Virus record (IMG/VR): IMGVR_UViG_3300027759_004177
Location: 1-64,000 of that record
Length of the DNA stretch: 64,000 nucleotides
Strand: one strand, 5' to 3'
Below are positions 9,214 through 61,877 of the stretch, piece after piece. The position numbers and the translations under genes were made by a program. The notes below the pieces were generated by a model. The model was not told the origin of the DNA and ran no database searches. It saw nothing but the letters and a program-made list of their open reading frames with translations. The stretch's first letter is position 1; each line of letters opens with the position of its first letter.

Positions 9214-10314
9214 TTATGCCTTGAGCATGTTAATAAGATTAGGGAAAGTTTTTGTAAAATCTAAATTTCTGCGTTTATCTATTGTGTTTAACGAGTATAC
9301 AACATTGTCTATATTTTTGTCAAATGGTTTGGTAAGAAATTCTGCACAATTATGTAAACTGTTGCCAAATGTTGTGTTTGGATTATATCTATTTAGATCG
9401 CTGATTAAATCACCTAAAATTTTATCACCAAAATTTCTAGCGTCCAAATATTTTGGTTGTGTCAAGTAATGTACTGCTGTGCGATCAATATCTACGCCCA
9501 AATCAATAAGATATTCCCCAGTTTCAACAATGTTGGTAGAGAGCAAGAAATAATTCATTGTTACACCAATTTTCTCCTGGGGCCATTGTTGAATCAATTG
9601 TCGAAGGTTCGTTTCAAACTCCGACCATACTCCTGGATGCCTGATATACTCAAATTGAGCACCTGTGGCTTCAACACTGATTTCCCATTGCACATTGTTA
9701 AACTGTTTTATTTTAGAATAAATTCCAGTTTTTAAATTTGAAAGATTAGTGGTGATGCGTACCAAGCAATCAGGATTGGCCGCATATAATCGATCCAACA
9801 GTTCGCCATTTTCTTTAATCATCAACGGTTCGCCGCCGGCCAAGTATACTTCTTGAAGTCCCGCCAGTTTATCGTGTGTGTAATCTTTCAATTGATCAAA
9901 TGTGGAACAATCGGCATTGACAGTTTGTCCCATTTCAGCCGCCCACAAACTGCTAAAGTATGGACCACAATAAACACAGGCATAGTTACAGACGTTTGAC
10001 CAGCGTAGATCCAGTTGTGTCAGTTTATGCGTACCATCGTAATCAATGTCAACGTCCTTGTGTAATTTGAGCTGGTATGCTCGATTACTAAACTCAGGAT
10101 CTACAGTTTCTCTTTGCTCGCATAGCTGACAGCTTTTGGGCCAGTGACCTGATTTTAAACTGTTTCTTATTTGTTGATTTTGTGTGTTGTCTAATATTAC
10201 AGCAATTGGTGAAGATTTTAAGTTGCCCAGGGTTTCTTGGCTCATGGCACAATTTCTAACAGAACCATCGGGATTAACAGCGACGCCAGTCCACGGAAGC
10301 GGACAAGCGATCAT
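9214..10314 (-). CDS. radical SAM protein with N-terminal twitch/SPASM-like domain
   Basis: CPLPW..PDGSVRNC, CQLC, then CNYACVYC, GGEP, TTN. Confidence 0.85.
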   Translation of the reverse strand: MIACPLPWTGVAVNPDGSVRNCAMSQETLGNLKSSPIAVILDNTQNQQIRNSLKSGHWPKSCQLCEQRETVDPEFSNRAYQLKLHKDVDIDYDGTHKLTQLDLRWSNVCNYACVYCGPYFSSLWAAEMGQTVNADCSTFDQLKDYTHDKLAGLQEVYLAGGEPLMIKENGELLDRLYAANPDCLVRITTNLSNLKTGIYSKIKQFNNVQWEISVEATGAQFEYIRHPGVWSEFETNLRQLIQQWPQEKIGVTMNYFLLSTNIVETGEYLIDLGVDIDRTAVHYLTQPKYLDARNFGDKILGDLISDLNRYNPNTTFGNSLHNCAEFLTKPFDKNIDNVVYSLNTIDKRRNLDFTKTFPNLINMLKA

Positions 10315-13769: not shown

Positions 13770-13798
13770 ATTGTATAATAGTATTTAGAAAAAGTCAA
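13770..13798 (-). promoter_or_regulatory. sigma70-like promoter with embedded TAAATA
   Basis: TTGACT-17-TACAAT with TAAATA in spacer; same architecture as folE promoter. Confidence 0.65.
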
Positions 13799-14745
13799 TG
13801 GTCTCGTCTTTTTATTTCGCCTAATACCTGATGTGCTTTGACCGTTTCCAGTGTGCCAGGCCGTTTGAGTTCGATCCAACTGACTGTGGTTCCTTGACCA
13901 TGTACGTCTTTGATGTAATATACCTCAAAACCCAAACTCTCACACATGGGTATCAACATGCTTTTTGGCATATAACTCATCCAAAAACTTTCTGCATAGT
14001 TGGCACCGTCGACTAAGTCGCCGTTGTTATAACTAAACATAAAAATGCCACCCGGACGTAACAGTCCCTTGACCGATTTTAAATATTCTTTTATAGTATC
14101 GAGACTGCGATAGTTTAGGAAATTCCAACAAAATACAAATCCAAATTGTCCCTGAGGCAATGCATCAAAATTGGTATCTTTGACAAGATATAGTCTTAGT
14201 CTGCGTTGATACTCATCTGGAAACTGACTGACTGTAGATTGTAAAAAATCTCTGTAGTGATCAGTGACATATAACGGATCAGCAGCCACAATGTGTTTGG
14301 TCCACTCACCATCCCGGCATCCAATTTCTAGTGCTGGATATTTCCAATTGGTATTTAATTGTATGCGATTATGAATTTCTGTTTGTAAAGATTCAGATAA
14401 CTCCATCACCCGTAATTTTCGTATGTTGCTCACTGCCTCTTCTTCGACACGCAATTCTAATTCGTAGTTATTGGTAAACAAGTGAGCCGCTTCCACGTGT
14501 ATCTGTTGATTTATTTTGTCGATGATGAGATCGAATCGAGACTGACTAAATTGTAAATCCTGGTGTAGTCTAGCAAAATCTCCAGTCAATTGATGGATTT
14601 CTGTTTGTACATCTGCCAATGGCGTTTCGTTGGCAATAGCACCAATGCGATTTTCTAAACTGTTAATACCCAAGGTAATGTCGTGAGTCGTGTACTCTGA
14701 TTTTAACAGCTCTCGGATTCGAACAAGTTCAGTTAATTTTTTCAT
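13795..14745 (-). CDS. class I SAM-dependent methyltransferase with N-terminal coiled coil
   Basis: ALEIGCRDG motif I; FGFVF; LLRPGGIFMF. Confidence 0.75.
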   Translation of the reverse strand: MKKLTELVRIRELLKSEYTTHDITLGINSLENRIGAIANETPLADVQTEIHQLTGDFARLHQDLQFSQSRFDLIIDKINQQIHVEAAHLFTNNYELELRVEEEAVSNIRKLRVMELSESLQTEIHNRIQLNTNWKYPALEIGCRDGEWTKHIVAADPLYVTDHYRDFLQSTVSQFPDEYQRRLRLYLVKDTNFDALPQGQFGFVFCWNFLNYRSLDTIKEYLKSVKGLLRPGGIFMFSYNNGDLVDGANYAESFWMSYMPKSMLIPMCESLGFEVYYIKDVHGQGTTVSWIELKRPGTLETVKAHQVLGEIKRRDH

Positions 14746-17474: not shown

Positions 17475-17503
17475 ATTATACTATCTTACTTAGCGTTTAG
17501 CAA
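17475..17503 (-). promoter_or_regulatory. sigma70-like promoter for DNA polymerase
   Basis: TTGCTA-17-TATAAT. Confidence 0.6.
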
Positions 17504-18011
17504 GAGCAATATCAAAAGAAATTGCCCGTCGTGTGCCAACAAATTCACATTTTGGAACCGAATGTCTAATATGACTGGGCCATATTAAAAGCATGCCTGC
17601 TGTGGGATTTATGATATGTATTTTGGTATCATTGTGAAACTGTATAGGTCCAGATCCTGTGGGAATTTCTACATAGTAAGTACCGCTGAAATGGCATTCA
17701 TCGTGCTGATGTGGAGCATGACACAACTCAGCAGTCATAGCAAACGGCCAGATGCCAATCAGCACTGACCGTTGGGAAAAATTATTGTATTGTTGTTGTA
17801 AAAATATATTAACGTGGGTGTTGATAAAATTTACAAATGGATTATTTTGATACAGTTGATCAATTTGATCAATGTTGTTGGCATTTCTTAGACCACGTAG
17901 TTCGTTAGTCCAATTTAAATCTGCTGTGCCATTGAACCAAGACTGTGCATAGTTTACAAAATCTTGATCCTGACATTCGTACAACCAGTCATCAAACACC
18001 TGATGCAACAT
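17490..18011 (-). CDS. putative 2OG-Fe(II) oxygenase
   Basis: HQH..FSGTYYV, GMLLIWPSHIRHSV, RRAISFD. Confidence 0.75.
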   Translation of the reverse strand: MLHQVFDDWLYECQDQDFVNYAQSWFNGTADLNWTNELRGLRNANNIDQIDQLYQNNPFVNFINTHVNIFLQQQYNNFSQRSVLIGIWPFAMTAELCHAPHQHDECHFSGTYYVEIPTGSGPIQFHNDTKIHIINPTAGMLLIWPSHIRHSVPKCEFVGTRRAISFDIALAKR

Positions 18012-18746: not shown

Positions 18747-19388
18747 CGGTTTAATTTCTGATTTTTCGTACATGACTGTGTCAGTGTCACCCAGGGCCCA
18801 TTTGGCGTCTGTTTCCACACTCCATCTACGAGTGGCCACACGAAAGTCTGGCTGTTTGAGTTCTCGAGGATTGCTACTGGGTTCTAATATGATTAGTCTG
18901 TTGTTGGGTTGTGCGGCAAACTGTCCGTTATCACAGCGTATGAAATTGTAGCTCTTGTGATCTTCCACATCCTCTGAGAAGCCAGTATCAAGTGTGTTAA
19001 AGTCTGGATGTGCTGAGTCCACAGTAAACATGTATTCGCCTGACATCCAGGCTCCATTCTTGAGTTTGAACTTGCAACGCATACTTTGTAGTTGTGCTTT
19101 TTTGATCACAGTGATATCGTAACTGAGACAGTCCCATAACTGTAGGTAATCCAACGGTAGTGGTTCGCCCTCTATGGGTTTCCAGCAGTAAGCATGTAAC
19201 GGTAACTTGTCATACAAAGCACCATACTGATTGAGATAGCTTTCAATACGGAATGCTTGACCTCTTAAACTTTTAATGCTAACCCACCACACAGGTTCTA
19301 ATTCACCGTGACCTTGCTCAAAATCATACAAAAACTCTCTACGAACAAAACATTTTACAGCGGGTAAGTTAGCTACTATGTGACTCAT
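18732..19388 (-). CDS. hypothetical protein
   Basis: 218 aa ORF, ATGA-coupled. Confidence 0.75.
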   Translation of the reverse strand: MSHIVANLPAVKCFVRREFLYDFEQGHGELEPVWWVSIKSLRGQAFRIESYLNQYGALYDKLPLHAYCWKPIEGEPLPLDYLQLWDCLSYDITVIKKAQLQSMRCKFKLKNGAWMSGEYMFTVDSAHPDFNTLDTGFSEDVEDHKSYNFIRCDNGQFAAQPNNRLIILEPSSNPRELKQPDFRVATRRWSVETDAKWALGDTDTVMYEKSEIKPNTLP

Positions 19389-20161
19389 TCACAGTTCCAA
19401 CGACGTCGTGCCTTGCAAATAGCTTTGTCTGGAGTTTTAGCACACGAAATGTTGTGCATGTTCATTTGACCCTTGCTACGTGAGCAATAGCTCTTACGAC
19501 GTTTTGAGGCTTTGCCGCCCTTCTTTAACTTACTAGGCTTGGTAGTCACAGCAGTCTTTAACTTTGAGCCTGGATTCTCTCTACGATAGGCTTTGACAGC
19601 TTTGCGACTCATACCGTCGGTCTTGTCTTTCTTGTTGGCTTTTTGCCAATCTTCCATTACAGGAGTTGTAGTTGCAAATACGTATAGTTCATCATCAGTT
19701 AAACTTTCTAGGTCTTCCCAGATCACTTCTGCATCTACTGAATTGCGTTCAGCAAGATCGTCGATGATTGATTCAATAAGATCAAATTCTTCATTTACTG
19801 TATCGACTATACCGTTTTCATGTTGACTAATCATATAGTCCATAACATTAACAATCATTCCTTTGGCTTGTGCTATTTTAGCTTGGCACCACTCTGGCAA
19901 ATTTTCATTATCTTGTATGGCTTTTTCTAAATGGGTACTAACTCTTTGAATAGTTTGTAGATCATTTTTAAACATGCCAGCTTCGTCGTTGTATTCTCTA
20001 TCAAAGTTTTCGGCCACACTTTCGGCTGGCACACAGTTGTTGACTCTAACTCCGCCCTTGACCTTGGTCTTGGGGTTGCCAATTTTTTTACCTGTCCAAC
20101 ACTTGGGATCCAAGCGTGTTTTAGTAGCTTTAGCTTCTGTTATAAATTCATTAGATTTCAT
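19385..20161 (-). CDS. modular putative capsid-internal protein
   Basis: N-terminus MKSNEFITE resembles T4 capsid-targeting sequence MKTYQEFIAE; modules CW..NCVP, LPEWCQAKI, basic RRKSYC..KARRRWNC separated by VAE/VNE/VME. Confidence 0.65.
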   Translation of the reverse strand: MKSNEFITEAKATKTRLDPKCWTGKKIGNPKTKVKGGVRVNNCVPAESVAENFDREYNDEAGMFKNDLQTIQRVSTHLEKAIQDNENLPEWCQAKIAQAKGMIVNVMDYMISQHENGIVDTVNEEFDLIESIIDDLAERNSVDAEVIWEDLESLTDDELYVFATTTPVMEDWQKANKKDKTDGMSRKAVKAYRRENPGSKLKTAVTTKPSKLKKGGKASKRRKSYCSRSKGQMNMHNISCAKTPDKAICKARRRWNCE

Positions 20162-21408
20162 TTTTTCTTTCCTGATTTCATGTTGGCACACCAGTGATAC
20201 ATTCGAGCACGTTCACCTGATGCATTCTTTGCTTTTTTACGTAAACTAGTCACACTTCCTGAACAACTGGCACCCGAACGTTTAACACGACCTGGACGAC
20301 TTTTGCCTTTGACCTTACCGTCGGCAAAGTTTTCCGCTATATCTTGCTTGGCTTTGTTTGCTTGAAATATTTTCTGTTCTTCTGGAGTGGGTTTTCTTAA
20401 CAAGTGCAGGTATTGATCTACCGGCAACGGTTTGACTTCTGTAGGAGTGATCTCTTTTACACCTGGGCGAGAATACCATTCAGCATCTGCTGCCCCACGA
20501 ACAAATAATGGTCGTCCTTGTTCATCTTTAGTTGGTAGTATGTGTAGATAGACATTTTCACCGTGTCTGATCTTGCCACCAAAAAATATTAGATGAGGAT
20601 CTTTCTTCCATCCAAAAGTACCAGTATTGGAACCACGCTCGGCCAAACTGTAAGCTATAGCAAAGTTAGGATCATCTGTGGCATAGATAGCATTTTTATT
20701 ACTTTTTTTAGCACCACCTATGTCATGGGCTTGCCTTGGAGTCAGCGGACCATTGATTTCTTGTGTGGAACCATGATACAAAACTTCTGGATATGATTCT
20801 GAACCTTCTGCTATACCCGACTTGGACTCACCGCCGTCACCACCTTCACCGGAACCGCTCCCACCGCCGTAGTAGCCATATCCTGGAAAAAAGTATCCAC
20901 CACCACCACCGCGAGACTTGCGTTTCTTTTTACGGGATTCGGACAGAAATGTGTCAGCAAAGCGTTTGCAAAGTTCTAGTATCTTGGCATTTTTTGTTTC
21001 TATGCTGGTATCAGGATCTTCTTCGGGGTTTTTATAGCCACAGTACACATGTTCAATACCAAAATCATCCAATAGTTGTTGACAATCTTCACCGTAGCGT
21101 TCACGATGGTCTGGAACACGAGCCGTGTTGCAAGGACTCAAGGTAGTCACAACAATACACTCTGGTCCTGGGTTGGGAGTTCTGTCCAAGGCCGCACGCT
21201 CTGCATGTACACGTAGACCATTTTTGGTTGCATGATTGATGCCAAATGTTCTGGTGCCGTCGGGACAGATCACACAAGCCGCTACCATGCCAAAATATTC
21301 AGAATCTTTTTGTTGGCCTGCAAGAACCATCTCGCACAGTTCTGCAAGTATGGCATCTAGTTCTGACTCGGGGTCAAACTGGGCTGTAAGGATTTCTTGG
21401 ATAATCAC
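20158..21408 (-). CDS. modular protein: Zn deaminase + ADP-ribosyltransferase-like domain + basic C-terminal module
   Basis: HAERAAL...TTLSPC...C; YHGS...IYAT...AIAYS...AEWY; GIAE/DIAE linkers. Confidence 0.7.
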   Translation of the reverse strand: MIIQEILTAQFDPESELDAILAELCEMVLAGQQKDSEYFGMVAACVICPDGTRTFGINHATKNGLRVHAERAALDRTPNPGPECIVVTTLSPCNTARVPDHRERYGEDCQQLLDDFGIEHVYCGYKNPEEDPDTSIETKNAKILELCKRFADTFLSESRKKKRKSRGGGGGYFFPGYGYYGGGSGSGEGGDGGESKSGIAEGSESYPEVLYHGSTQEINGPLTPRQAHDIGGAKKSNKNAIYATDDPNFAIAYSLAERGSNTGTFGWKKDPHLIFFGGKIRHGENVYLHILPTKDEQGRPLFVRGAADAEWYSRPGVKEITPTEVKPLPVDQYLHLLRKPTPEEQKIFQANKAKQDIAENFADGKVKGKSRPGRVKRSGASCSGSVTSLRKKAKNASGERARMYHWCANMKSGKKK

Positions 21409-21450
21409 TATCGTCGCCTTCGTTCTGTTCTGGATATACTGGATATTCGT

Positions 21451-22500
21451 TCATTTTGGTTTGTATGTTTGTGCGTCAGGGTCTGGTTTAGAATTTCTAA
21501 TGTCAATCTTGACAGCCGGTGTTGGGTTGATTTTTTTTGTACTGGGAGTTTTGGGTGGAGTATAAGTTTGTTGAACAGCAAGCTCAGCTGGCTTGTTGAC
21601 CTGAATAGCTTCTTCCATTCCAAAATATTCTGGATTGTCACTGGCAAAATCACGCATGATGATACCAGCATTGGCATTGGCTTCATTTTCTTCATCAGTG
21701 CCAGTGTTGCCTGAATTGTCGTCTAATATACCAGCTAAGTTTTGTTTATGATGAGTAAGTTCGTGTGCTAAGGTACGCAACACATCAACAGGATGACGTC
21801 CAGCAGTGACCAAATACAAGCATTTGTTGTCGGCATCGTACGTGCCAAAACTGGTGTTCATTGGCCGGTCCAGTAGTTCTATCTTGGGCAGTTGTTTAAT
21901 ATCTAATTCTTTTTGTAGCCAAGGCAAGAACTTTTTTACAAATTTATTTGTCACGCTTTCGTTGATGCTTTCTCTGTAGACCGATCTGGCACGTTTGATA
22001 TAATTGCCTAACATTTGTACCTTGCGTTGTAAGAACACAAGATATTCGTCCATTTCTTGTTCTGTGGTGGGTGTAGGATAATCTAATTCTATGTCTGCTG
22101 CCAAACCGGGTGGTATGCCCATTCGTGTGCGTTCGGCTCGGTTGACCAATGTTGGTATGGTGTTCTGAACCAGTTCTATGATTTGATCCAATTTGGCACG
22201 TTCACGTTGTAGAGTCTTTAGATCTTTTTGTGTTTTGGGTTGGGCAACAGATGCGGGTTCAGTCATGGATGCCACGGGCGGTGTAGTCTGTGGTTGATTC
22301 AATTGACGTTTGATATCATACAACTGCGACAAGTTTTTGGCGGGTAACCCAAACTTGTGAGTGTCAATGGTTTCATTTTTTTTACGACCAGCACAATGAG
22401 CCCGTTGACTAAATCCTTTTGGATTAGCACAGTTGATAGAGCTTTTGTATTTCCGGCTCCACTTTTCATCTAGGGGCGAAAAAACTTCGTTAATTTTCAT
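21451..22500 (-). CDS. modular protein with zincin metallopeptidase domain
   Basis: RTLAHELTHHKQ and ENEANA; N-terminal MKINEV and KWSRKYK..C..C module. Confidence 0.7.
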   Translation of the reverse strand: MKINEVFSPLDEKWSRKYKSSINCANPKGFSQRAHCAGRKKNETIDTHKFGLPAKNLSQLYDIKRQLNQPQTTPPVASMTEPASVAQPKTQKDLKTLQRERAKLDQIIELVQNTIPTLVNRAERTRMGIPPGLAADIELDYPTPTTEQEMDEYLVFLQRKVQMLGNYIKRARSVYRESINESVTNKFVKKFLPWLQKELDIKQLPKIELLDRPMNTSFGTYDADNKCLYLVTAGRHPVDVLRTLAHELTHHKQNLAGILDDNSGNTGTDEENEANANAGIIMRDFASDNPEYFGMEEAIQVNKPAELAVQQTYTPPKTPSTKKINPTPAVKIDIRNSKPDPDAQTYKPK

Positions 22501-22934
22501 TTTGCTGTGGCACGTAGCATCCAACTATGTTTTCTATGAGCATCCATGCGTTCAGCAAGGAAATTACTGAAACCATGCTCGCCCGCTTGTTCAGCAACAT
22601 CATAAACTCGTTTCAGTAGTTTGACCATGTTGTCGCTATCTTGTAGTAATTCTTGTACCATGGCTTCGGCTGGAAGTATGCTGGTTTCATCTTCTATGCG
22701 GCTCAGCATGTTGAATCTGCTGCTGGAACCTGGTGCATAGGCACCCATAGCACGAATACGTTCAGCGAAGCCGTCTATGTTGCCGTAGACTTCTTCGTAG
22801 ATTTTTCCAAATAGATCATGCAGTTGGCCGAAGTCTGGACCTTCCACGTTCCAATGAAAGTAGTGTGCTTTTAGATAAAAAGTGTATTCGCTGGCAAAGC
22901 CAATCTTGGCCGCTTTGATTAATTGTTCGTTCAT
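22497..22934 (-). CDS. dps: Dps/ferritin-like protein
   Basis: HYFHWNVEGPDFGQLHDLF, DGFAERIR, KHSWML. Confidence 0.92.
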   Translation of the reverse strand: MNEQLIKAAKIGFASEYTFYLKAHYFHWNVEGPDFGQLHDLFGKIYEEVYGNIDGFAERIRAMGAYAPGSSSRFNMLSRIEDETSILPAEAMVQELLQDSDNMVKLLKRVYDVAEQAGEHGFSNFLAERMDAHRKHSWMLRATAK

Positions 22935-25183
22935 TTGATATCCTTGACGCTTTCTGTTAATTCACTGACCAGGCTGGCAATTTTTGTATTGCGTTCGTTC
23001 TGTAGTCGAGTCCAGTAGTTGGTAGTTTCGCCAAACTGCTCCAAGTCACGTTTCTCTTTGGCACGTTTTTTGGCGTAGTCAGTCTGTGGATTGCGTGGCA
23101 AGGGTTTGACAGGCTGACCAGCATTGACCTTACGCTCACGTTCACGACGCTTGAAAAAATCTGTTTGTGCTTCTTTAATATCTAGTCCGTATTTGTTTTT
23201 GTATAGATCCATCAGTTGTGGAATATACGCACGGGTAACACCGTAGTCGCTTTTCATTTTCATCTTACCCAATTCCATGGCATAAGCATCGTATGCGGCA
23301 TTGAGTACTTGGTCGTGTGTTGCTAACCCATCGGGCATACGTTCTAGTGCTCGTATTAGAATAGGATCTACACGATCGCCAGCTTCTGCTACACCTTCAC
23401 CTGCGTGTTTGAAGTATTGTACTTCACGTTCGTGTTTTTCTGCACCAGCTCGAGTTGGGAATGTGCCCAAGTTCTTGCCCTTACCACTGTACAAACGATA
23501 TTGACTACCAAGTTTACGAATGGTCTCATCTACAGCATTTTCATTCCAATAGTCATCTTTTGGATCTGTTTTGGCAGTTTCCTCGTCATACTCGATGTCA
23601 GCTAAATTCATACTATGCATACCATGGTTATATAAGTCTACAATAACAAAACGACCGCTTGGACTAAACTCAGACAGCCTGCCTGGTTTACCTTTAAATT
23701 CATTGGATCCTGTAACCTTAATAGGATCACCTACCTGTAAATCCGTATCGACTACCTTGGTGGTCACAGAGTATTGTTGTTCTACACTTTCTTTGGCCCA
23801 TTGGTCGTGTTCACTTGACCAACTATTTTGACCGTTGTGCCAACTATCTTCTTCCAGACCTTTGAAGTCAGGAGTGGGCAACTTATATTTTTTACTGAGT
23901 TGTTTGTCCAACAAGTAATAACTACGATCAGGGGCAGGGGCCTGGCTGATTTGAAAACGCTGTTGGTATTTGTGTGCAAAATCCTGACGCATGGTTGTTA
24001 TCATGGGATCGTTGGGGTTGGCATACACACGTTCTAAGAATATCAGAGCATCTGCATAGGCCTGATTGGTTGTTTTGTTGTCGGTCATTGGTACAACGTC
24101 ACCTTCACTGAACTGTAATGGCATTTGACTCAAATGTTGTGCTTTAAATTCTTTAAAATAATTGTGATCGGTAAACAACTGTTGCCATACTTGTGGACGT
24201 GTTTGTTCTGTATAGTCTGTGGCAATAGCACTAACAATTTGTTCAACTTCTTGGAATGTTAAATCTTCCCATTGTCCGTCGCCAAAGTATAATTTTGTAG
24301 ATTGGCTATGTGCCCATGCTTGTGAAAACGCTTGGTTATTATGTTGTGCAATGTTCTGCAAGTCAGCGGGACTAATTGCTTCTCTCATATTAACTCGTTG
24401 TTGATATGTGCCGGTATTAGCAGCATCCACTGGAAAACCAAGGCTGGATAATTGGTGCGAACGTTGTTGAGCTTCTGGATTACTAGGCATCTGCACAACA
24501 TTGGTGCCTGGTAATTCTTGTTGTGCAGGCGGGGCAGTTAATTGTTGCGCCATTTGTCCTATTGCATTGGATTGATTTTTTCCCTTGATTACTCTACCAG
24601 GCGGAGTAACTGCAGGTGCTAGTGTTGCTTGCGGAGCCGCAGGTTGTGTCTTGGCTGTTGCGGCACCTTGATCTTTGGCCTGTTGATAATTGGCCAATTG
24701 AGATACGCTGGCACCTGGACTAGGAGCAGCTACAGTCTTGGCGGGTTGGGTCGCTGTTTGTTTTGCAACTACATTTGAAATATCGGCAGGTTGATCTTTG
24801 TTTGTATCGTGTGAGGATTCAATGTCTTGCGCCATCTTGGCCGCTTGCTGTGGTGTCACGTTGGGCATGTTGGCTATTTGAGCATTTAGATCACGAAAGT
24901 CTTTTTCTTTACGACGCATGTCGTTCACTAGGTCATTGATCTGTTTGGTCTGTTGTTGATTTGTTTTGGTCTGTTGATCTAGTGCTTGATCTTGTTTTTG
25001 ATTCAAACTGTTTTGTATGTCAATGTACCCAAGTGCAGCTTCTTCAGGGCTTTTTGCAGCAGGCACAGCACGATACGCATTGTCAAGAGCATTTTTGACT
25101 CGTGCGTCTTGGCTGGTCCCGCCTACAAATCTGCCAGCGGCAGCATCTTGTTTTTTCTTTTCAAATAAATCAAATACAAACAT
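22931..25183 (-). CDS. large modular putative virion protein
   Basis: MFVFDLFE start, coiled coil, Q/A/P linker, KOW-like VGDPIKVTG, KGKNLGTFPTRAGAEKHE module; GVAE/IKE linkers. Confidence 0.65.
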   Translation of the reverse strand: MFVFDLFEKKKQDAAAGRFVGGTSQDARVKNALDNAYRAVPAAKSPEEAALGYIDIQNSLNQKQDQALDQQTKTNQQQTKQINDLVNDMRRKEKDFRDLNAQIANMPNVTPQQAAKMAQDIESSHDTNKDQPADISNVVAKQTATQPAKTVAAPSPGASVSQLANYQQAKDQGAATAKTQPAAPQATLAPAVTPPGRVIKGKNQSNAIGQMAQQLTAPPAQQELPGTNVVQMPSNPEAQQRSHQLSSLGFPVDAANTGTYQQRVNMREAISPADLQNIAQHNNQAFSQAWAHSQSTKLYFGDGQWEDLTFQEVEQIVSAIATDYTEQTRPQVWQQLFTDHNYFKEFKAQHLSQMPLQFSEGDVVPMTDNKTTNQAYADALIFLERVYANPNDPMITTMRQDFAHKYQQRFQISQAPAPDRSYYLLDKQLSKKYKLPTPDFKGLEEDSWHNGQNSWSSEHDQWAKESVEQQYSVTTKVVDTDLQVGDPIKVTGSNEFKGKPGRLSEFSPSGRFVIVDLYNHGMHSMNLADIEYDEETAKTDPKDDYWNENAVDETIRKLGSQYRLYSGKGKNLGTFPTRAGAEKHEREVQYFKHAGEGVAEAGDRVDPILIRALERMPDGLATHDQVLNAAYDAYAMELGKMKMKSDYGVTRAYIPQLMDLYKNKYGLDIKEAQTDFFKRRERERKVNAGQPVKPLPRNPQTDYAKKRAKEKRDLEQFGETTNYWTRLQNERNTKIASLVSELTESVKDIK

Positions 25184-25185
25184 TC

Positions 25186-26280
25186 TTATACTCCGCCCTG
25201 TTGTTTAGCTAATTGTGCCGCTGCTTGATCTTTTTGCATGCCTTTACTGATCAGTTGTTGTAACTGTTGACCCAATTGGGGATCTTTGATCAAATTTGCC
25301 ACAGGATCTGCCAGAGCACTGGCTGCATCTTTATCTTGTGATGATAATGGATCACTGTCGTCGGCCTTGCTTAAGGCCGCAGTTGCTTTTTGTATATTAA
25401 GATCCGGAACTTTTGATTTTAAATTTTGTAAATTTTTTGTGATGGTGTCAATTTCTTGACCAGCTTGTGTGTTCGTATTTGTGTTGCCACCTGTGGCTGT
25501 GCCACCCGAAGTCATTCCATAGGTACCAACTAATTCGTTCATGTAGGCTTCGTATTCTTCATCTACGGGCACACAGTTAGGAACCATGCGGTTGCCTTTT
25601 TTCTTCATACCAACTTGCTTGTGAGTATCCCAACATTTTTCATCTAGTTTGGATTCATCGGTGCCAACCAGGCGTCCTGTAAAAGGATGTTCACCGGATT
25701 TTTTCTTGGTGGCCTTTTCTGTGCCACGCACCTGATCACCGGGACGTTGCTTGGGATTGGCAAAACTGAATTTGCCACCTTCTTTGATTAGTCCGGCACG
25801 ACGTGCCGCAAATTCAAGATCAAGACGACGTTGTTTATATTCTGGATAAAACTGAGCCATCTTTGGATTTTGTAACGCCTGATCAATTGCATCTAGTTTG
25901 GCATAGTAGTCGGACAGAGTATTCAACTTGTTGTGGCCACCACGATTGACCGAAGCATGTGCCTTGGGATCATCTACGTAACTACCATCATCGTCGGTGC
26001 TTTCATCAAATTCAACGTTGTAATCTTTCTGCAATTGATCAACAACACGATCAAAGATTGGTTCAAAATCGTCTTTGGCATGTAGTCCAGTGTCAATTAC
26101 TACTTCATCATAATAATTGTGAATAATTTCACTTACGTATTTTTCAACTTCATCTTTTGGATGTGCATACACATCGTAAATGTCGACTCGACCGTTAACA
26201 ATATCTTGAATCAATAAGTCAGCCTCGGACATCGATTCTTCAACTCGTTTGAGAGATTCTAAAATTTGGTAGATATCCAT
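25186..26280 (-). CDS. modular putative virion protein
   Basis: MDIYQILE start; KCWDTHKQVGMKKKGNRMVPNCVP module shared with 19385..20161. Confidence 0.65.
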   Translation of the reverse strand: MDIYQILESLKRVEESMSEADLLIQDIVNGRVDIYDVYAHPKDEVEKYVSEIIHNYYDEVVIDTGLHAKDDFEPIFDRVVDQLQKDYNVEFDESTDDDGSYVDDPKAHASVNRGGHNKLNTLSDYYAKLDAIDQALQNPKMAQFYPEYKQRRLDLEFAARRAGLIKEGGKFSFANPKQRPGDQVRGTEKATKKKSGEHPFTGRLVGTDESKLDEKCWDTHKQVGMKKKGNRMVPNCVPVDEEYEAYMNELVGTYGMTSGGTATGGNTNTNTQAGQEIDTITKNLQNLKSKVPDLNIQKATAALSKADDSDPLSSQDKDAASALADPVANLIKDPQLGQQLQQLISKGMQKDQAAAQLAKQQGGV

Positions 26281-26465
26281 TACTTGACCTTTTTAACCTT
26301 GACTGTGCCGCCTGGAGTTTTTTGATTGCTGTAGGACTTTTGACGCTTAATAAGATCTGTAGTAGCCCCGCCTAGCCCTGTAGAGACAGTGGCCACGCTA
26401 GACGAGCCTGTAGCGCCACCAGATGCATTTTCTTTTAGAGTTTTAATAAATTCAGAGCTTTTCAT
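26280..26465 (-). CDS. small putative capsid-internal peptide
   Basis: MKSSEFIKTLKE-NASGG; CTS-like N-terminus. Confidence 0.6.
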   Translation of the reverse strand: MKSSEFIKTLKENASGGATGSSSVATVSTGLGGATTDLIKRQKSYSNQKTPGGTVKVKKVK

Positions 26466-26491
26466 TGTATTTTTTTCCGTGTTAAGTATAT

Positions 26492-26764
26492 TTATTCTGT
26501 TGTAGTGAACTCGGGCTTAGAAGCTACCCCGTCCACTGTTATATCTTTAATCTGTATCTTGCCGTTGTTACCTATTTGTTCTATACGCAGTTGATGAACT
26601 CCGGGTTTGAGATCAACCACGATGTTTTCTCTAATAAAAACTTCATGCCCGGGCCATCCAAAGTCGCGTTCGGTCAGCAAATCACCGTCTACATACACCC
26701 TGTAGCTCGGGCTAACCTCACCCCAGTGGGCATACACATCGGCGGTTATTAGGTGTTGTTTCAT
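26492..26764 (-). CDS. hypothetical beta-rich protein
   Basis: 90 aa ORF, ATGA-coupled. Confidence 0.65.
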   Translation of the reverse strand: MKQHLITADVYAHWGEVSPSYRVYVDGDLLTERDFGWPGHEVFIRENIVVDLKPGVHQLRIEQIGNNGKIQIKDITVDGVASKPEFTTTE

Positions 26765-27963
26765 TTGGGATCAAACATCAATTTGGCACGTTCTGCTTCA
26801 AGATCGGCAATTTTTTGCTTTAGTTTAGCCACATAATCAGCGGGTAGCTTTTCTGTAGCAATACGCTCTTTGATGGAATCAATATCTTGATTGATATACT
26901 TGATATGTGTCAAAATTAAATTGTCAACTTCGCTTTCGCTTAATCTATTTCTTGCCCAAGCAATATCTTCTTCGGCCAAGTTAAAAGCACGTAGATTTTT
27001 GCCTGGTGTGCCAGGACCAACATCCACTGTCATGCTGGTGCTGTAACGTGGATCACGGGCTTGCTTTTTATTTTTAGCTACTACACCTACTCCAGCAGCT
27101 TCTTCTTTGACAGTTTTTAATCTGTTTACAAAATCATGTAGTTCTTGTTTTTCTTTGGCGCTCAATGAACCGGGATTTTTTTTGTAACGATATGCCAATA
27201 GTTTATAGTAACCATGTTCGCTGTTGGGCTTGCTGGGCACAAAATGACTGACTGCTTCTGCAACAGGTTCTTCTTTGGGTACTGTGACTTTTTGTAGTTT
27301 GGTTTTGTTGGGCAATGGTGCAGGAGCCACATCAACAGCCGGTAAAAGATTATTGTTCATAATCTTTTCTGCTTCGTGTGTGTACTTGCCGTATAAATCT
27401 TTGATTATTTGCTGGCGTTGTGCATTATTGGCTTTGCTGTATAAATCTCTAATGCTGGTAGCACCTGTAATGGATTGCCCCAGTATTTCAAATGGCTCTA
27501 CATTGACCACTTGAATATATGCGTGTTTGTCTGCACTTTCAACTCGACTCAGATCATCGGGTAATGGTTGCAGTTTTGCTGGTGAACCGTCTTTGTTAGT
27601 GCCTTTGGCAAACAAGCTGGGTTTTTCGTCTACATCTTTTTGGCTAACAGGGAAGATCATGACAGTATTGCCGAGATCTTGTATGCCCAAGGCTTGAGCA
27701 GCTACCGCAGGGTTGTAATTGTTTGACAGTTGTAGTATGCGGTCAGATGGAATTCCCATCAAATTCATAAAATAAATTCGATCGGAAAGTTTAAAAGGGC
27801 TTTTTGGGGGGTCTACTTTGCCGCTAGTACCAATATAAACGTTGTTACGTCCATATGTACTGACTAGATTATTATAGACTATTGCGTGGCCACGATGGAA
27901 AGGCTGGAATCTTCCACAAAAAATAACAACAACACGGCGTTCTGCTAGTTCATTAAGAAACAT
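26761..27963 (-). CDS. HxGH nucleotidyltransferase (cytidylyltransferase-like) with modular C-terminus
   Basis: GRFQPFHRGH, SPF...DR, GATSIRD. Confidence 0.75.
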   Translation of the reverse strand: MFLNELAERRVVVIFCGRFQPFHRGHAIVYNNLVSTYGRNNVYIGTSGKVDPPKSPFKLSDRIYFMNLMGIPSDRILQLSNNYNPAVAAQALGIQDLGNTVMIFPVSQKDVDEKPSLFAKGTNKDGSPAKLQPLPDDLSRVESADKHAYIQVVNVEPFEILGQSITGATSIRDLYSKANNAQRQQIIKDLYGKYTHEAEKIMNNNLLPAVDVAPAPLPNKTKLQKVTVPKEEPVAEAVSHFVPSKPNSEHGYYKLLAYRYKKNPGSLSAKEKQELHDFVNRLKTVKEEAAGVGVVAKNKKQARDPRYSTSMTVDVGPGTPGKNLRAFNLAEEDIAWARNRLSESEVDNLILTHIKYINQDIDSIKERIATEKLPADYVAKLKQKIADLEAERAKLMFDPK

Positions 27964-44143: not shown

Positions 44144-44182
44144 TGTGCTTCTCCTATATGCATTATTTATAAACTGGGTAGT

Positions 44183-46243: not shown

Positions 46244-46280
46244 TTATCTTATCCTAATTATTGTATATTTATGAAGCCGT

Positions 46281-53502: not shown

Positions 53503-53569
53503 ATATTAAATCCTTATATAGCATTATTTATCGGATTTGGCTCGAGCTGGGCCGTTGGCTAGTTGTGTG

Positions 53570-53896
53570 TTATGTTGGGCTAAAACTGCTTCCGCAACCG
53601 CAAGTAGTAACTGCGTTGGGGTTTTTGATGGCAAACGTACTGCCGTATTGATCTTCTCGGTAGTCTATTTCTGCACCTTGCAAATATCCACCGCTCATGC
53701 TGTCTACTAGAACCTGTACACCGCTGATGTCTAACTCCCAATCATCTTCTGCTTGAGTATCATCTAGGGTGAAACCGTAGCTCATGCCGCTACAGCCACC
53801 GCCTTGTACAAAAACTCTGAGTTTTAAACTGGGGTTATTTTCCTCGGCCAAAATTTCTTGTAATTTTGCCACTGCTGATTCAGTTATTGTGATCAT
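53570..53896 (-). CDS. erpA: A-type Fe-S carrier (ErpA/IscA)
   Basis: [20 protein letters not shown]. Confidence 0.88.
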
Positions 53897-54435
53897 AATC
53901 TGCGATTGATGGCGTCCCAATCCATGATACGCCATAAGTTGTCTAGGTATTTTTCTTTGTTGGTTCCATAATCTATGGTCCATGCATGTTCCCACCAATC
54001 CACTAGCAGAGCTATGTCTGTGCGTTTTTGATGATTATGTATAGTTTTAATGGTTCCTGATTTGCTAAGATAAATCCAATTGGATCCTTGCAGTTTCATG
54101 GCTTCTTCTTTGAAACGTTTTTTAAAATCCACAAAATTTTTATGATTGCGTTCGATAATACTCAGTATCACGCCATGTGGTTTGCGAGTACCGGGGCGAG
54201 CAAATTGACTGAACCAGATACTGTGCAAGTAAGCACCGGCTTCGTTAAATGTACGATCTCCCTCTTTCTTATTGAAACGGTCAACATAGCCTTTGTACAA
54301 TTTACCGTAATGATTGTCTATGGTGGCCGCACTGGTCACAGGTGCCAGGGCAGTACGAGCATAGGGCAGTTTGATCTGCTCTAGGTCAACTTGGCTTTTT
54401 GCTTCTAGGAGGTCTAAGGTTTCGCGGAGGTCCAT
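53893..54435 (-). CDS. Fe/Mn superoxide dismutase
   Basis: LPY..L.P, H(YGK), H(SIW), DWWEHA metal ligands. Confidence 0.85.
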
Positions 54436-56901: not shown

Positions 56902-57143
56902 TTAAACTTTAAACTAAACAAGGTAGCATCTCGTGCTTCTGTAAAGTAAAAGGCAGCAACTTCGTCAAACATAGCACTGACATCTGAAGTTTCCACCAAC
57001 TCTGTCCAAAGCAAACTTAGGTTCTGTTCTTTGCACCAACGTTTCATTTTCCACATCACAAATGCAGGATCTCCAATTAACACTCGATGACATTGATCAA
57101 GTACCGCTTGCGGCGGAGTAAGGTCGGCCTTGTTTATATACAT
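56898..57143 (-). CDS. small paralog-family protein
   Basis: WC...FYFTEARDATLFSLKF. Confidence 0.65.
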   Translation of the reverse strand: MYINKADLTPPQAVLDQCHRVLIGDPAFVMWKMKRWCKEQNLSLLWTELVETSDVSAMFDEVAAFYFTEARDATLFSLKFK

Positions 57144-58720
57144 TATCGGTTGATGTGTTTGATCAATTCCCAGTGTGTTGGTACTAGGTCTAGCACACCA
57201 CGGGCCATTTCATCACGGTGTTTATAGAACAACCGAGCACGTGGTAACAGGGCTTCCGTGATTGGACGTGTTGGACAATCCGCAAATGCCCTCATGGTGG
57301 TGATAGTCTGTGCCCAGTCGTACTTGTTATAACGTGTATGGTCGAAGTCTTTCTCACGTCTGTAGATATCGCTAAAATGACGACCAAACCAGCCGTGTAC
57401 CATATCAACAGCTTCCTCACGTTTGGCGGCTTGCTCACGCCAAAACTCTGTGTCTGAGCGTTCTGTCAAGGCATAGTGTGCCCACAGGAAGTCTCCAGTA
57501 ATTTTAACTTCTCTGCTCATTAAACGACTTAGTACACGATCCTCGCCGTCGTTCCAATGGCCATCGTGCTTCTTAAGTACTGCCACTACTAGTTCATTGA
57601 TAAGTGTAGTAAAGCTAATGCTAGTAGCTTCCAAAGGTTCTAGGAAGTTTGAGCTCAATCCACAGGCGATCACGTTGCGATGAGCACTACGATCCAAGAT
57701 ACCATTATCAAACTTTAATGTAACTTTGTGATCCCAAGTCATTCCTAGATTCTGCCAGTAAGCACCTAGCTCTTCTACAGCTTGTTCTGTGGTAGTGTAA
57801 CGTGTATCATAAACGTAACCCGAACCCATGTCGTCACGCAAGGGAACTCGCCACGACCAGCCATGCTTGAATGCTGTGGCGTGTAGGTTGGGTACGCAGA
57901 ATTCTTCTTGTTTGCCTTGATAGTTTACACGTCCGCCAACGGCGTTTTTACAAGGTAGTCGATCTTCGTAACTGACCCATTTGGCCACGGGTCCAATTAG
58001 TAAACGCTTAAAACCTGTGCAGTCAATGTACAAGTCTGCGGTGTGAGTTTCTCCGCTATCGTCAACAATGCCAGTGACTTCTTCACGTTCGTTACGATCA
58101 ACTCGTACAATATGACGCTCTAAGGTACGAACACCGTTGGGAACGGCCACTTTGTCTCGAATAGTCTGTCCAACTTTGAATGCGTTGATGTTGTAAGCAT
58201 AGCCCGGCACACGACTTGAATACTGATGTCCCGCTAGATCTCTATGAGCACGACGATTTTGTACTAAATGATATGTGTCTGACGCATACTGATAGTAATC
58301 CGCTTCTGTAATGATGCCACGTTTAAGCATTTCAATCCAGTAGTCAGCTATGAGTACAGAGTCATCCTTGGCACAACTAACACGCTTGCCAAATTCATCT
58401 ATACTGTGGTTAATACCCTTTTCTGTAACAAAGTCGCCAAACCCGTGCCAGCGAGTGTCTGAACCTGTGCGCCACCCATCAAAGGTGACTCCGTATTTGA
58501 ATGTACTGCCCGATTCACGCATCCACACATCTTCTGATAATCCCATTTTTTCTAAATGATTACGGAACTGTGGTACTGTGGTTTCGCCTACACCAATGAT
58601 GGGAACTTCTTTACTGTGTATTACAGTAACTTCTATTCCAGGCAGTTGACTACTTAAAAAGCCAGCACTAAGCCAGCCCGCGGTTCCGCCGCCTACGACT
58701 ATGATTTTTTTAACTTGCAT
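57143..58720 (-). CDS. flavin-dependent tryptophan halogenase-like protein
   Basis: GGGTAGW, IGVGE, TFK, DCTGF, GWSWRVP, FLEPLEATSI. Confidence 0.88.
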   Translation of the reverse strand: MQVKKIIVVGGGTAGWLSAGFLSSQLPGIEVTVIHSKEVPIIGVGETTVPQFRNHLEKMGLSEDVWMRESGSTFKYGVTFDGWRTGSDTRWHGFGDFVTEKGINHSIDEFGKRVSCAKDDSVLIADYWIEMLKRGIITEADYYQYASDTYHLVQNRRAHRDLAGHQYSSRVPGYAYNINAFKVGQTIRDKVAVPNGVRTLERHIVRVDRNEREEVTGIVDDSGETHTADLYIDCTGFKRLLIGPVAKWVSYEDRLPCKNAVGGRVNYQGKQEEFCVPNLHATAFKHGWSWRVPLRDDMGSGYVYDTRYTTTEQAVEELGAYWQNLGMTWDHKVTLKFDNGILDRSAHRNVIACGLSSNFLEPLEATSISFTTLINELVVAVLKKHDGHWNDGEDRVLSRLMSREVKITGDFLWAHYALTERSDTEFWREQAAKREEAVDMVHGWFGRHFSDIYRREKDFDHTRYNKYDWAQTITTMRAFADCPTRPITEALLPRARLFYKHRDEMARGVLDLVPTHWELIKHINR

Positions 58721-58750
58721 TTGGGATCTCTTTAGTTGAACAAGTATTTA

Positions 58751-59062
58751 TCATGACCATTTAAGCGTAAACCAAATACGTTGTTCTTCATTATCGAAAT
58801 GTATGACCATGCCAGCACAATGATCTTCTCCACGTGGCAAGTTTTTTTGCATCCATTCTGTGACATCATAATGATTAACATGCCACCAGGCATAGTCCTC
58901 AATGATCAACAGGTAATCACCATCTATAGGACCGCGGGCAGGTATAAATCTGTTTTTACTATCCATTTGTATAGTCCCGTTAAGGAACTTTAGTGTTTCG
59001 CCATTGTGCTTGACTTCTATTAAGTTCAATTGCTCGGTGATTTTGGTCACATGTTTTGTCAC
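58751..59062 (-). CDS. small paralog-family protein
   Basis: C-terminal IHFDNEEQRIWFTLKW. Confidence 0.6.
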   Translation of the reverse strand: MTKHVTKITEQLNLIEVKHNGETLKFLNGTIQMDSKNRFIPARGPIDGDYLLIIEDYAWWHVNHYDVTEWMQKNLPRGEDHCAGMVIHFDNEEQRIWFTLKWS

Positions 59063-60725: not shown

Positions 60726-61877
60726 TTAGAATGAATGTTTCATTCCAACTGACAATGACTTATTATCTACTCCTGAAGTCATTGCAGCTGCGGATCCGTA
60801 AACAGCAGTCATTTTGGATACACCGCTGTTATCGGTCGTGGCCAACATGCTGTACAAACTGGTACGCTTGCTTAGATCATAGTTGACAGCCAAACCGGTT
60901 GTGCTACTCTTGTTGGCAGTGGTATACTTGTCTTGTGCGACTGTATACTCAACACCAACCCACATAGGAGCAGTCACTTGATATTTGACGCCAGCTGTGG
61001 TAATGTCAAGATCGTTTCCTACTCGAGTAGTGAACAGGTTGTTATCAAATCTACTCATGGTTTTGGCAGCACTGATTTTGAATTTGTCAAATTGGTAACT
61101 GGCACCAAACACAGAATTACGTAGTGCTGTGGCACCAGTAGTGTTGGCCACAGTACCATATCCAGCAGATGCTGTAAATCCACCTTGAACGTATCTTAGT
61201 GTGGCTTCCCGCATGATTCCAGCATTGATTGTGGTGGCACTACCAGATCCTGGTGATGTAAACAAACTTGCTGTCAATCCTTTGAACGCAGGAGATGTGT
61301 AGCCGATACCGTTGCTGAAAATTTGTGGTGTTGTGCCGCTGGTACTGGCTCCGCCGATGTTGGTTCCTGCATCCTGACCTGTGATCACATTGGTACCATT
61401 CAAACGACTACCAAGTACCCAGTAGTTGATCAAGCCCATACCATTTACTCCCAATGCGTCGTTGCCGACTACTACAGCGTACAATGGATTGATTTGACGA
61501 CCAATTTTTATTTCACCCAATGAATTTTTTGCACTGATGTTGGCGGCACGGTTAAACACTTCGGCTGTGCCTGTGGTACTTTGTGCAGCTCCAGTGGTGC
61601 TTGATCCAACTGCGCCGGTGCCCAGTGACACCTGTGATTCCAAGTTGAAACCAATGGCCAAACCACCACCTGCATCTTCAGTTCCGCGAATACCAAACCT
61701 ACTGGTACTCCAACCATGAGAATTTAAACCTGATTGATTTGCTGTGGAACCGCTTGCTTGTTGTATTGCGTAATAACTTTGGTCTAGATTTCCATAGACA
61801 TTCACGCTGGATGCCTGTGCTTGAACTGTGGTACTAAACACGCCAGCCAGAAGAGCCGACAGTAGTAATTTTTTCAT
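60726..61877 (-). CDS. Gram-negative trimeric porin, Burkholderiales/Neisseriales type
   Basis: Signal peptide; SSVNVYG, SRFGIRGTED.GGGL, FNLE, GRQ, YDLSKRT, C-terminal GMKHSF. Confidence 0.9.
   Translation of the reverse strand: MKKLLLSALLAGVFSTTVQAQASSVNVYGNLDQSYYAIQQASGSTANQSGLNSHGWSTSRFGIRGTEDAGGGLAIGFNLESQVSLGTGAVGSSTTGAAQSTTGTAEVFNRAANISAKNSLGEIKIGRQINPLYAVVVGNDALGVNGMGLINYWVLGSRLNGTNVITGQDAGTNIGGASTSGTTPQIFSNGIGYTSPAFKGLTASLFTSPGSGSATTINAGIMREATLRYVQGGFTASAGYGTVANTTGATALRNSVFGASYQFDKFKISAAKTMSRFDNNLFTTRVGNDLDITTAGVKYQVTAPMWVGVEYTVAQDKYTTANKSSTTGLAVNYDLSKRTSLYSMLATTDNSGVSKMTAVYGSAAAMTSGVDNKSLSVGMKHSF

Follow-up and report, generated by a model that had tools for sequence, protein, structure and literature searches.

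Internal proteins of phage T4 are directed to the head by a short tag at their N-terminus, the capsid targeting sequence (CTS) MKTYQEFIAE, in which residues 4 and 7 are needed for targeting and residues 8 and 10 for processing; a single cleavage removes the tag and the protein remains in the head. The internal proteins of the T-even phages form a diverse anti-restriction set with only the CTS in common. Both this sequence and the rule that the prohead protease gp21 cuts after (I/L/V)-x-E had been given in a preliminary description of the DNA considered here, and both were borne out. The inner-body or ejection proteins of phages phiKZ, 201phi2-1 and SPN3US are cut after Glu by a gp21-related protease, and their propeptides are thought to be targeting signals. 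Polyvalent proteins, as presented by Iyer et al. (2017, PMC5512222), join 2-15 unrelated effector domains, with packaging and delivery together with the DNA predicted. The window analysed in this work comprises 64,000 nucleotides, the first 64 kb of the 356,865-bp IMG/VR record IMGVR_UViG_3300027759_004177. Positions 19385-27963 of its minus strand encode nine co-oriented genes, g1 to g9, mostly joined via overlaps of stop and start codons and placed between ClpA-like and DNA polymerase genes. This stretch is probably a hypervariable capsid-cargo island, in which tagged polyproteins would be loaded into the head, cut by a gp21-type protease and probably injected.

Leaders, linkers and module exchange

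The genes of the island and the parts on which the argument depends are as follows (lengths in amino acids, aa):

19385..20161, minus strand: g1, 258 aa; leader MKSNEFITE, basic two-Cys KCW..NCVP module, SVAE, acidic helical part, PVME, basic four-Cys DUF6321 module
20158..21408, minus strand: g2, 416 aa, GTG start; MIIQE, cytidine/dCMP-deaminase-like domain, basic Gly-rich spacer, GIAE, 158-aa YHGST..IYATDD domain, DIAE, 57-aa basic two-Cys tail starting with NFADG
21451..22500, minus strand: g3, 349 aa; leader MKINE/VFSPLDE, basic two-Cys KWS module, helical part, SINE, HExxH zincin-like metallopeptidase module, P/T/K-rich tail
22497..22934, minus strand: g4, Dps/ferritin-like, without leader; conserved and not shuffled
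22931..25183, minus strand: g5, 750 aa; leader MFVFDLFE and at least seven modules, with boundaries after FSE, LEE, VDE, VAE, IKE and FGE
25186..26280, minus strand: g6, 364 aa; leader MDIYQILE, acidic part, helical module ending in LIKE, basic part, KLDE, KCW..NCVP module, Q/T-rich tail
26280..26465, minus strand: g7, 61 aa; leader MKSSEFIKTLKE, then NASGGATGSSSVATV (a copy of the capsid maturation site and of the start of the mature N-terminal arm), basic tail
26492..26764, minus strand: g8, conserved 90-aa open reading frame (ORF) without leader; its membership of the system is doubtful
26761..27963, minus strand: g9, 400 aa; leader MFLNELAE, nucleotidyltransferase resembling nicotinamide mononucleotide adenylyltransferase (NMNAT; GRFQPFHRGH), PVAE, basic module, C-terminal module
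20806..20817, minus strand: GIAE linker, an example of a predicted internal cut site (g2 residues 198-201)
23384..23395, minus strand: GVAE linker (g5 residues 597-600)
19388-19651, 20009-20134, 20161-20331, 22258-22464 and 25558-25638, minus strand: short basic cassettes with two or four conserved Cys (KCW..NCVP, KWS..C..HC, NFADG..SC..WC, DUF6321)

The similar short leaders that had been named at seven of these genes are all present, that of g3 reading MKINEVFSPLDE, that of g7 as listed above and the others as quoted originally. They span 5-12 residues and end in hydrophobic-x-Glu (seven of the nine genes), and an [ILV]xE motif within the first 12 residues is found in 7/9 island genes against 10/79 of the other window ORFs (Fisher p = 8.8e-5). 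The true starts of g1 and g3 are internal ATG codons overlapping the upstream stop codon, while the GTG start of g2 has a Shine-Dalgarno-like AAGG box and its MIIQE N-terminus is kept in homologues. The g3 leader is also similar to that of Atu_ph07 gp199, MKLTELFNPLTE. In a second comparison set, consisting of 77 ClpA-adjacent islands, 286 of the 517 ORFs of the variable region have leaders, as compared with 158 of the 917 ORFs lying upstream (p = 1e-49). The 227 distinct leaders of this set show a sharp length peak at 8-9 residues, carry L or I at P3 in 87% of cases and form two classes, MK[ST][ST][ED]F[IV]xE and MF[IL]x[ED]L[FA]E. Outside the island, a Fe/Mn superoxide dismutase (SOD; Pfam Sod_Fe_N, Sod_Fe_C) encoded at 53893-54435 on the minus strand has an 11-residue leader before the SOD fold, and may represent a further head-targeted enzyme.

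The linkers that had been quoted between unrelated modules (SVAE, GIAE, DIAE, GVAE, PVAE, SINE, PVME, LIKE and KLDE) are likewise all present, and comparison with relatives revealed that they mark genuine junctions. A check suggested in the preliminary description, namely whether the breakpoints of module gain and loss in relatives coincide with xxE linkers, turned out clearly positive. A scan with g5 found six non-redundant related loci (including L003-L007 and L009), with DNA polymerase and ClpA-like flanks 85-98% identical and an island rearranged module by module. In this comparison, 62 of 62 module instances, belonging to 17 module types, begin directly after Glu, with a hydrophobic P3 at all but about three of them, a count with some circularity because the anchors were picked where homology begins. 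In an automated test, the starts of BLAST high-scoring segment pairs fell within two residues of a motif in 30/104 cases against 10.5 ± 3.1 in the null, and the ends in 32/87 against 8.5 ± 2.8.

A closer view of individual genes is consistent with these counts. The g2 orthologues of L003, L004, L007 and L009 lack the middle domain, the gap falling exactly between both linkers; g9 misses one module in L007 and has an extra one in L004, both changes lying exactly between two xxE sites. Modules of g5 are gained, lost or relocated across L003-L009, and those of g1 recur in other orders in L005 and L007. Moreover, the same module may follow either a leader or an internal linker: DUF6321 comes after the leader MKSSDFVVE or MKVTEIITE in L007, L009 and L005, and in the window, L004 and L006 it stands behind internal PVME or LLSE; MKIFE is the peptidase module's own leader in L007, and internal SKIFE precedes that module in L009; and the g7 module is found behind TLKE (leader) or SLNE (internal). 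The basic tail NFHDGKVKGK.. is preceded by IAE, VSE, MAE, LKE or LEE, with unrelated sequence before each of them. As judged from these alignments, N-terminal leaders and internal linkers are interchangeable across phages.

The 158-aa middle domain of g2 extends this picture to 27 further proteins of diverse architectures, with ParB, DUF6321, deaminase or peptidase partners, which start with MRAHEFINE, MRAQEFIQE, MRAKEFIVE, MKAKEFVTE or MKINEILTE. In 26 of the 27 the domain is preceded by xxE, typically that of QGVAE/G or, in P0027, that of the leader end MNLYNLFE/G; the exception, P0004, has it behind the leader MRAHEFINE and a five-residue NFADG stub. Throughout the 77 islands GVAE occurs 146 times against 4.1 expected (35-fold), Gly predominates at P1' and linkers are spaced by a median of 72 residues. 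The linker consensus across the clade is QGVAE/G. In one relative, the corresponding genomic position encodes a protein of 718 aa that has some eleven linkers of the QGVAE type (ten GVAE and one TVAE), together with a 71-aa protein starting MRAHEFIAE/NASAGAT. The codons of the linkers differ synonymously, and the constraint is therefore on the peptide and not on the DNA, which rules out a DNA-level recombination signal at the linkers.

Prohead protease, capsid site and proposed cargo

Clade relatives encode a Peptidase_S77 prohead protease with invariant columns at T4 gp21 His85 and Ser140, which we take to be the catalytic residues. Their head module follows the order portal, 81-aa core protein, acidic scaffold-like protein, Peptidase_S77 protease, scaffold protein and gp23-like capsid protein, and its proteins have N-termini similar to the island leaders (MSQLLNE, MLLNE, MKLAYLRE, MLDAFKQLVE); those of g3 and g9 in particular resemble the leader of the small core protein encoded beside the portal gene. 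The clade is large, with at least 8000 capsid-protein clusters at E <= 1e-100. In 113 distinct clade capsid proteins a conserved YLxE site is followed by [SAN]ATAGATS, with RRxxP and GVQPM motifs further on. Since the same two motifs come after the LTE/AEIGG maturation site of T4 gp23, YLxE was placed at that site, an equivalence judged by inspection.

The g7 family copies this capsid site together with some 16 residues of the N-terminal arm of the mature protein. A hidden Markov model (HMM) of the family gave 80 matches among 2054 proteins, all 80 of them capsid proteins, at residues ~38-57 (best E = 5e-5). A phmmer search with g7 alone returned zero matches because of compositional bias, but a homologue and the family HMM did reach the capsid proteins. 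The whole arrangement is found on one contig, IMGVR_UViG_3300047558_000137 (374,314 bp; ClpA 80% identical to that of the window), which carries an island with leaders and shuffled modules, a protease homologous to gp21 (E = 8e-22 versus T4) and a major capsid protein. In this capsid protein (L265 9763-10941) the site reads ..MLAE/NASGGAT.., as compared with TLKE/NASGGAT in g7 of the window, with seven identical residues. From this resemblance, g7 could serve as decoy or as anchor, or could duplicate a good cleavage site. In addition, a basic, Cys-rich protein of 67 aa whose leader is MRASEFITE or MRINELIFE adjoins the capsid gene in two relatives and lies within the island in a third.

Three kinds of fragment are predicted: small basic pieces (pI, isoelectric point, 9.6-11.2), many of which contain exactly two or four conserved Cys, acidic helical spacers (pI 4.1-4.6) beside the basic modules, and enzyme-like domains. 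In keeping with the earlier proposal of enzymes and basic peptides, both enzyme-like domains and small basic peptides are thus represented. The conserved Cys of the short basic cassettes could form Zn knuckles or disulfide staples. For most cassettes, Pfam (E <= 1) and a PDB sequence search gave no match. Residues 178-255 of g1 correspond to DUF6321 (PF19846; E = 7.9e-9, 36.5 bits against a gathering cut-off of 28.5), the metallopeptidase module of g3 matches the phrog_87 metallo-protease, and NCBIfam returned for g9 NMNAT matches only, all of them sub-threshold. The g2 middle domain (residues 202-359) has no Pfam or PDB sequence match; its AlphaFold2 model, of moderate confidence (pLDDT 76), gave as top Foldseek hits the rifampin ADP-ribosyltransferase (ART) Arr (E = 0.1, probability 0.66), EcPltA and CARDS toxin. 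When the H-Y-E/D-type pattern of ARTs was sought, His11, Tyr41 and Glu109 of the domain were found to be invariant. From the model, it is possible that this domain is an ADP-ribosyltransferase, paralleling T4 Alt.

Island polyproteins of relatives contain amidoligase, nucleotidyltransferase and ParB-like domains, weak sub-threshold GNAT-like matches and a faint Phage_T7_kinase match (L174 1089-6992; P0015, P0022), and so offer a catalogue of candidate host-takeover or anti-defence modules delimited by linkers. Related cassettes were also observed in described phages. The gp088 protein of Flavobacterium phage immuto (L261 2246-4969; 907 aa, annotated as NMNAT) has a nucleotidyltransferase, an NMNAT-like domain and the same HExxH peptidase module, uniting cassettes of g9 and g3 in a single polypeptide. 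In the T4-like cyanophages S-SM2 (L260 3704-6255) and B23 (L012 2497-3627), KWS, KCW and DUF6321 cassettes occur in multi-module proteins at the known hot spot between the terminase genes g16 and g17, and SSM2_108 has the leader MKTLKQFLKE; both are cultured phages, so virion proteomics could probe the model there. Cyanophages B3 and S-SRM01 are further candidate isolates with such cassettes, as is SSM2_109 among the S-SM2 genes. A cytidylyltransferase detected in virions of cyanophage S-SM1 is only a loose parallel to g9, for which no direct sequence match was found in marine cyanophages. Apart from the cassettes, a Dps/ferritin gene such as g4 is also found mid-island in five of the six closest loci, in L174/L175, L195 and L250, and none was seen in L006, a short contig.

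Regarding timing, the window has 14 copies of ATAAATA, a motif that includes the core of TATAAATA, the late promoter of T4. The coding strand bears 13 of these copies, and eight sit 27-36 nt upstream of a start codon. Genes preceded at this distance include g7 and g9 as well as tail-fibre-like ones (43688, 45008 and 50314):

26489..26495, minus strand: ATAAATA, 30 nt upstream of the g7 start codon
27986..27992, minus strand: ATAAATA, 29 nt upstream of the g9 start codon, with the same spacing before the tail-fibre-like genes 45008 and 50314
44164-44170, 46266-46272, 53525-53531 and 58745-58751, minus strand: further ATAAATA, 27-32 nt upstream of start codons

In relatives the motif lies just upstream of structural genes and, by analogy with T4, it is probably the late promoter of the clade. 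It was also observed before a tryptophan-halogenase-like gene (57143-58720).

Proposed mechanism and rival explanations

In the mechanism proposed here, a CTS-type N-terminal propeptide of 8-12 residues would dock the proteins onto the prohead core. Behind this tag come strings of independent cassettes, comprising enzyme-like domains, small basic Cys-containing peptides and acidic spacers, the enzyme-like ones being deaminase-like, NMNAT-like nucleotidyltransferase, zincin-like peptidase and possible ADP-ribosyltransferase modules. At head maturation, a Peptidase_S77 of the gp21 type would cut after the Glu of the [ILVM]-x-Glu linkers, removing the tag and freeing the cassettes within the head, from where they would probably be injected with the DNA. 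As neither the address tag nor the cut sites are specific to one cargo, any in-frame recombined cassette would become cargo, and this would explain the extreme shuffling. We infer packaging, cleavage and injection from the leaders, the linkers, the shuffling at the linkers, the homology of protease and capsid site in relatives and the late-promoter-like motifs, all of which are observed.

Several points weigh against this mechanism. T4 queries placed neither the Peptidase_S77 (gp21) gene nor the capsid genes of the source phage within the 64-kb window, and the island adjoins replication and chaperone genes (DNA polymerase, ClpA-like, DnaJ) and not the head module. The dps gene (22497-22934) and g8 (26492-26764) have no leaders. 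Support for the enzyme identities is weak (E = 1e-6 for the deaminase and 0.1 for the ART-like fold, with NMNAT below the curated cut-off). The late-promoter label for ATAAATA comes solely from the T4 analogy, and the exact T4 octamer TATAAATA is not enriched. Finally, several [ILVMF]xE motifs lie within folded domains and are not boundaries, so the motif alone defines no site, and the density of [IVM]AE in the island is only about 3-fold above that of the rest of the window; for both reasons, the weight of the evidence comes from the cross-genome comparison and not from motif counts in the window.

Among the alternatives, it is unlikely that these proteins are prohead core or scaffold components which are targeted and cut, with a role in assembly or charge balance, and whose pieces are mostly expelled like those of T4 gp22, gp67 and gp68. 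The acidic helical spacers (pI 4.1-4.6) that adjoin basic modules, the likeness of the g3 and g9 leaders to that of the portal-adjacent small core protein, and the T4 core proteins themselves, which are cut to peptides and then lost, are all in line with such a role. Against it, neither hypervariability nor catalytic folds (deaminase, nucleotidyltransferase, ParB, amidoligase, SOD) would be expected in an essential scaffold, and basic peptides of DNA-binding type fit the retained internal proteins of T4. Some of the fragments may nevertheless be expelled scaffold-like material and not injected cargo.

Another explanation holds that processing is carried out by the island's HExxH zincin-like metallopeptidase or by a host protease, with the products acting while still in the producing cell's cytoplasm or once released, so that packaging is unneeded. 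The island-encoded enzyme could indeed be the processing one, a further point against the gp21-type mechanism: its module is present in the window (g3) and in six of the six closest loci, and Iyer et al. propose autoprocessing of polyvalent proteins by such peptidases (PMC5512222). However, the cut-like motif, with hydrophobic P3 and Glu at P1, has the same form as the capsid site, the T4 gp21 sites and the N-termini of head-module proteins, the peptidase module occurs in fewer than half of the 77 islands (marker tetrapeptides TLAH 25 times, AHEL 30 times), and no peptidase match was reported for the scanned QGVAE-rich proteins of L174/L175. Taking these observations together, we regard this explanation as quite improbable. 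To our knowledge, Glu-specific cleavage is moreover atypical of zincins.

We consider very unlikely a third possibility, that nothing is cleaved or packaged, the leaders being translation or folding features and the xxE/QGVAE stretches flexible linkers of shuffling-tolerant cytoplasmic multidomain proteins. In its favour, Gly/Ala-rich linkers are frequent in multidomain proteins and MK-rich N-termini promote expression. It leaves unexplained the Glu at 62 of 62 junctions with its hydrophobic P3, the interchangeability of leaders and linkers, the g7 copy of the capsid maturation site and the likeness of the leaders to the T4 propeptides of gp24 (MAKINELLRE) and Alt (MELITELFDE).

Beyond the capsid-cargo reading of the island itself, we lean slightly towards the wider view that a very large environmental jumbo-phage clade of the T4 superfamily keeps a plug-and-play island, in which a universal tag of 8-9 residues and the QGVAE/G linker would let any cassette joined in frame be packaged, released and injected, either as an effector or as a peptide that condenses DNA. 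Such an island would be a phage counterpart of viral polyproteins and of modular effector delivery, with a small mimic of the capsid maturation site, and its cargo may include NAD-related and nucleic-acid-modifying enzymes directed against host defences. If this is true, the one-tag-one-cut principle of T4 is extended into a combinatorial polyprotein system whose cargo is exchanged between genes and phages, and the hypervariable island in many related contigs is explained. The leader and the QGVAE-type linkers would then provide a simple sequence rule to predict injected phage proteins in metagenomes, with hundreds of candidate anti-defence or host-takeover modules pre-delimited by cut sites, as well as minimal tags and linkers of natural origin with which foreign proteins could be loaded into large capsids; the specificity of the S77 prohead protease would be directly testable on many natural substrates.

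Genome context and comparison with known systems

The source of the window is a jumbo phage of the T4 superfamily. The family-B DNA polymerase that it encodes shares 51% identity with the enzyme of Sinorhizobium phage Phosso, 47% with that of Agrobacterium phage Atu_ph07 and ~42% with those of Rak2-like jumbo phages, and the gene order DnaJ, ClpA-like, DNA polymerase is common to the window and Atu_ph07. The ClpA-to-polymerase interval of Atu_ph07 was considered as a counterpart of the island and rejected, its contents being tail-fibre-like and other unrelated genes; because this syntenic interval has no island, the published virion proteome of Atu_ph07 is not transferable. A megablast search of GenBank phages with the island DNA gave zero matches, as did a tblastn search with g2.

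Some neighbouring genes bear on the host and on modification. A Gram-negative porin (Porin_4, E = 1e-35) with a signal peptide is encoded at 60726-61877 on the minus strand, a similarity which suggests a Gram-negative host and a possible alteration of its outer membrane. The NCBI entry for one capsid protein of the clade (P0058) lists it as a hypothetical protein from a metagenome-assembled genome of Synechococcaceae; this is either an artefact of binning or a hint at freshwater picocyanobacteria as hosts. Around the DNA polymerase gene, also on the minus strand, a radical SAM/SPASM enzyme, a methyltransferase and a 2OG-Fe(II) oxygenase are encoded at 9214-10314, 13795-14745 and 17490-18011, respectively, and by their families may have a role in nucleic-acid or peptide modification.

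Literature on DUF6321, on the linker sequence and on the CTS in connection with jumbo phage, cyanophage or polyprotein contained no description of the system that could be found, and the closest known counterparts share different parts of it. Like the T4 internal proteins, those of the island have a short tag (MKTYQEFIAE in T4, MKSNEFITE here and MRAHEFIAE in a relative) and cleavage-type sites of the form hydrophobic-x-Glu, together with a cargo of basic proteins plus enzyme that is highly diverse across related phages. The seven leaders of the window are counterparts of the propeptide typical of T4-type CTS-targeted and gp21-processed proteins, which has about ten residues with hydrophobic targeting positions and ends in (L/I)-x-Glu, and the same cleavage motif at the capsid maturation site was found in relatives only. 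The T4 proteins, however, consist of a single module with one cut, whereas up to about ten cassettes, internal linkers and shuffling between genes are seen here; the leaders form two classes of 8-9 aa, the locus is flanked by the ClpA-like and DNA polymerase genes, and the system is known from sequence alone. A second likeness is to T4 gp22, gp67 and gp68, which have several gp21 sites, are cut into pieces and start with N-termini of the same style (MLKEQLIAE, MEGLIE and MLLIPE), but these are conserved assembly proteins, their fragments mostly leave the head and they do not serve as hypervariable enzyme carriers.

As to the head-internal proteins of the phiKZ type, many are cut after Glu by a prohead protease homologous to the one proposed for the island. 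In them P3 is small (S/A/G-x-E or A-x-E) and the propeptides are often longer than 100 aa, while the leaders here have 8-12 aa and P3 is I, L, V or M. Neither the small P3 nor the long propeptide was found in the island, where the linkers have V, I, L or M at P3 and the leaders end with L or I in that position. On the other hand, the polyvalent proteins have an overlapping domain vocabulary (zincin-like peptidase, ART, ParB) and join several conflict-type domains in one polypeptide, a feature found here in part: deaminase, HExxH peptidase and NMNAT-like domains in the window, and ParB, amidoligase and nucleotidyltransferase domains in relatives. In contrast with the island, polyvalent proteins are single giant proteins for which self-processing has been proposed, and the portion of Iyer et al. 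on which this comparison draws describes no universal capsid tag and no protease-site linker for each cassette.

Altogether, as read from the sequences, the tag-and-cut logic and the protease family of the island are T4-like, and the idea of multiple effectors in one protein is that of the polyvalent proteins. What appears to be new here is the regular build of cassette-linker polyproteins, whose cassettes pass freely from gene to gene, together with a protein that mimics the maturation site of the capsid.

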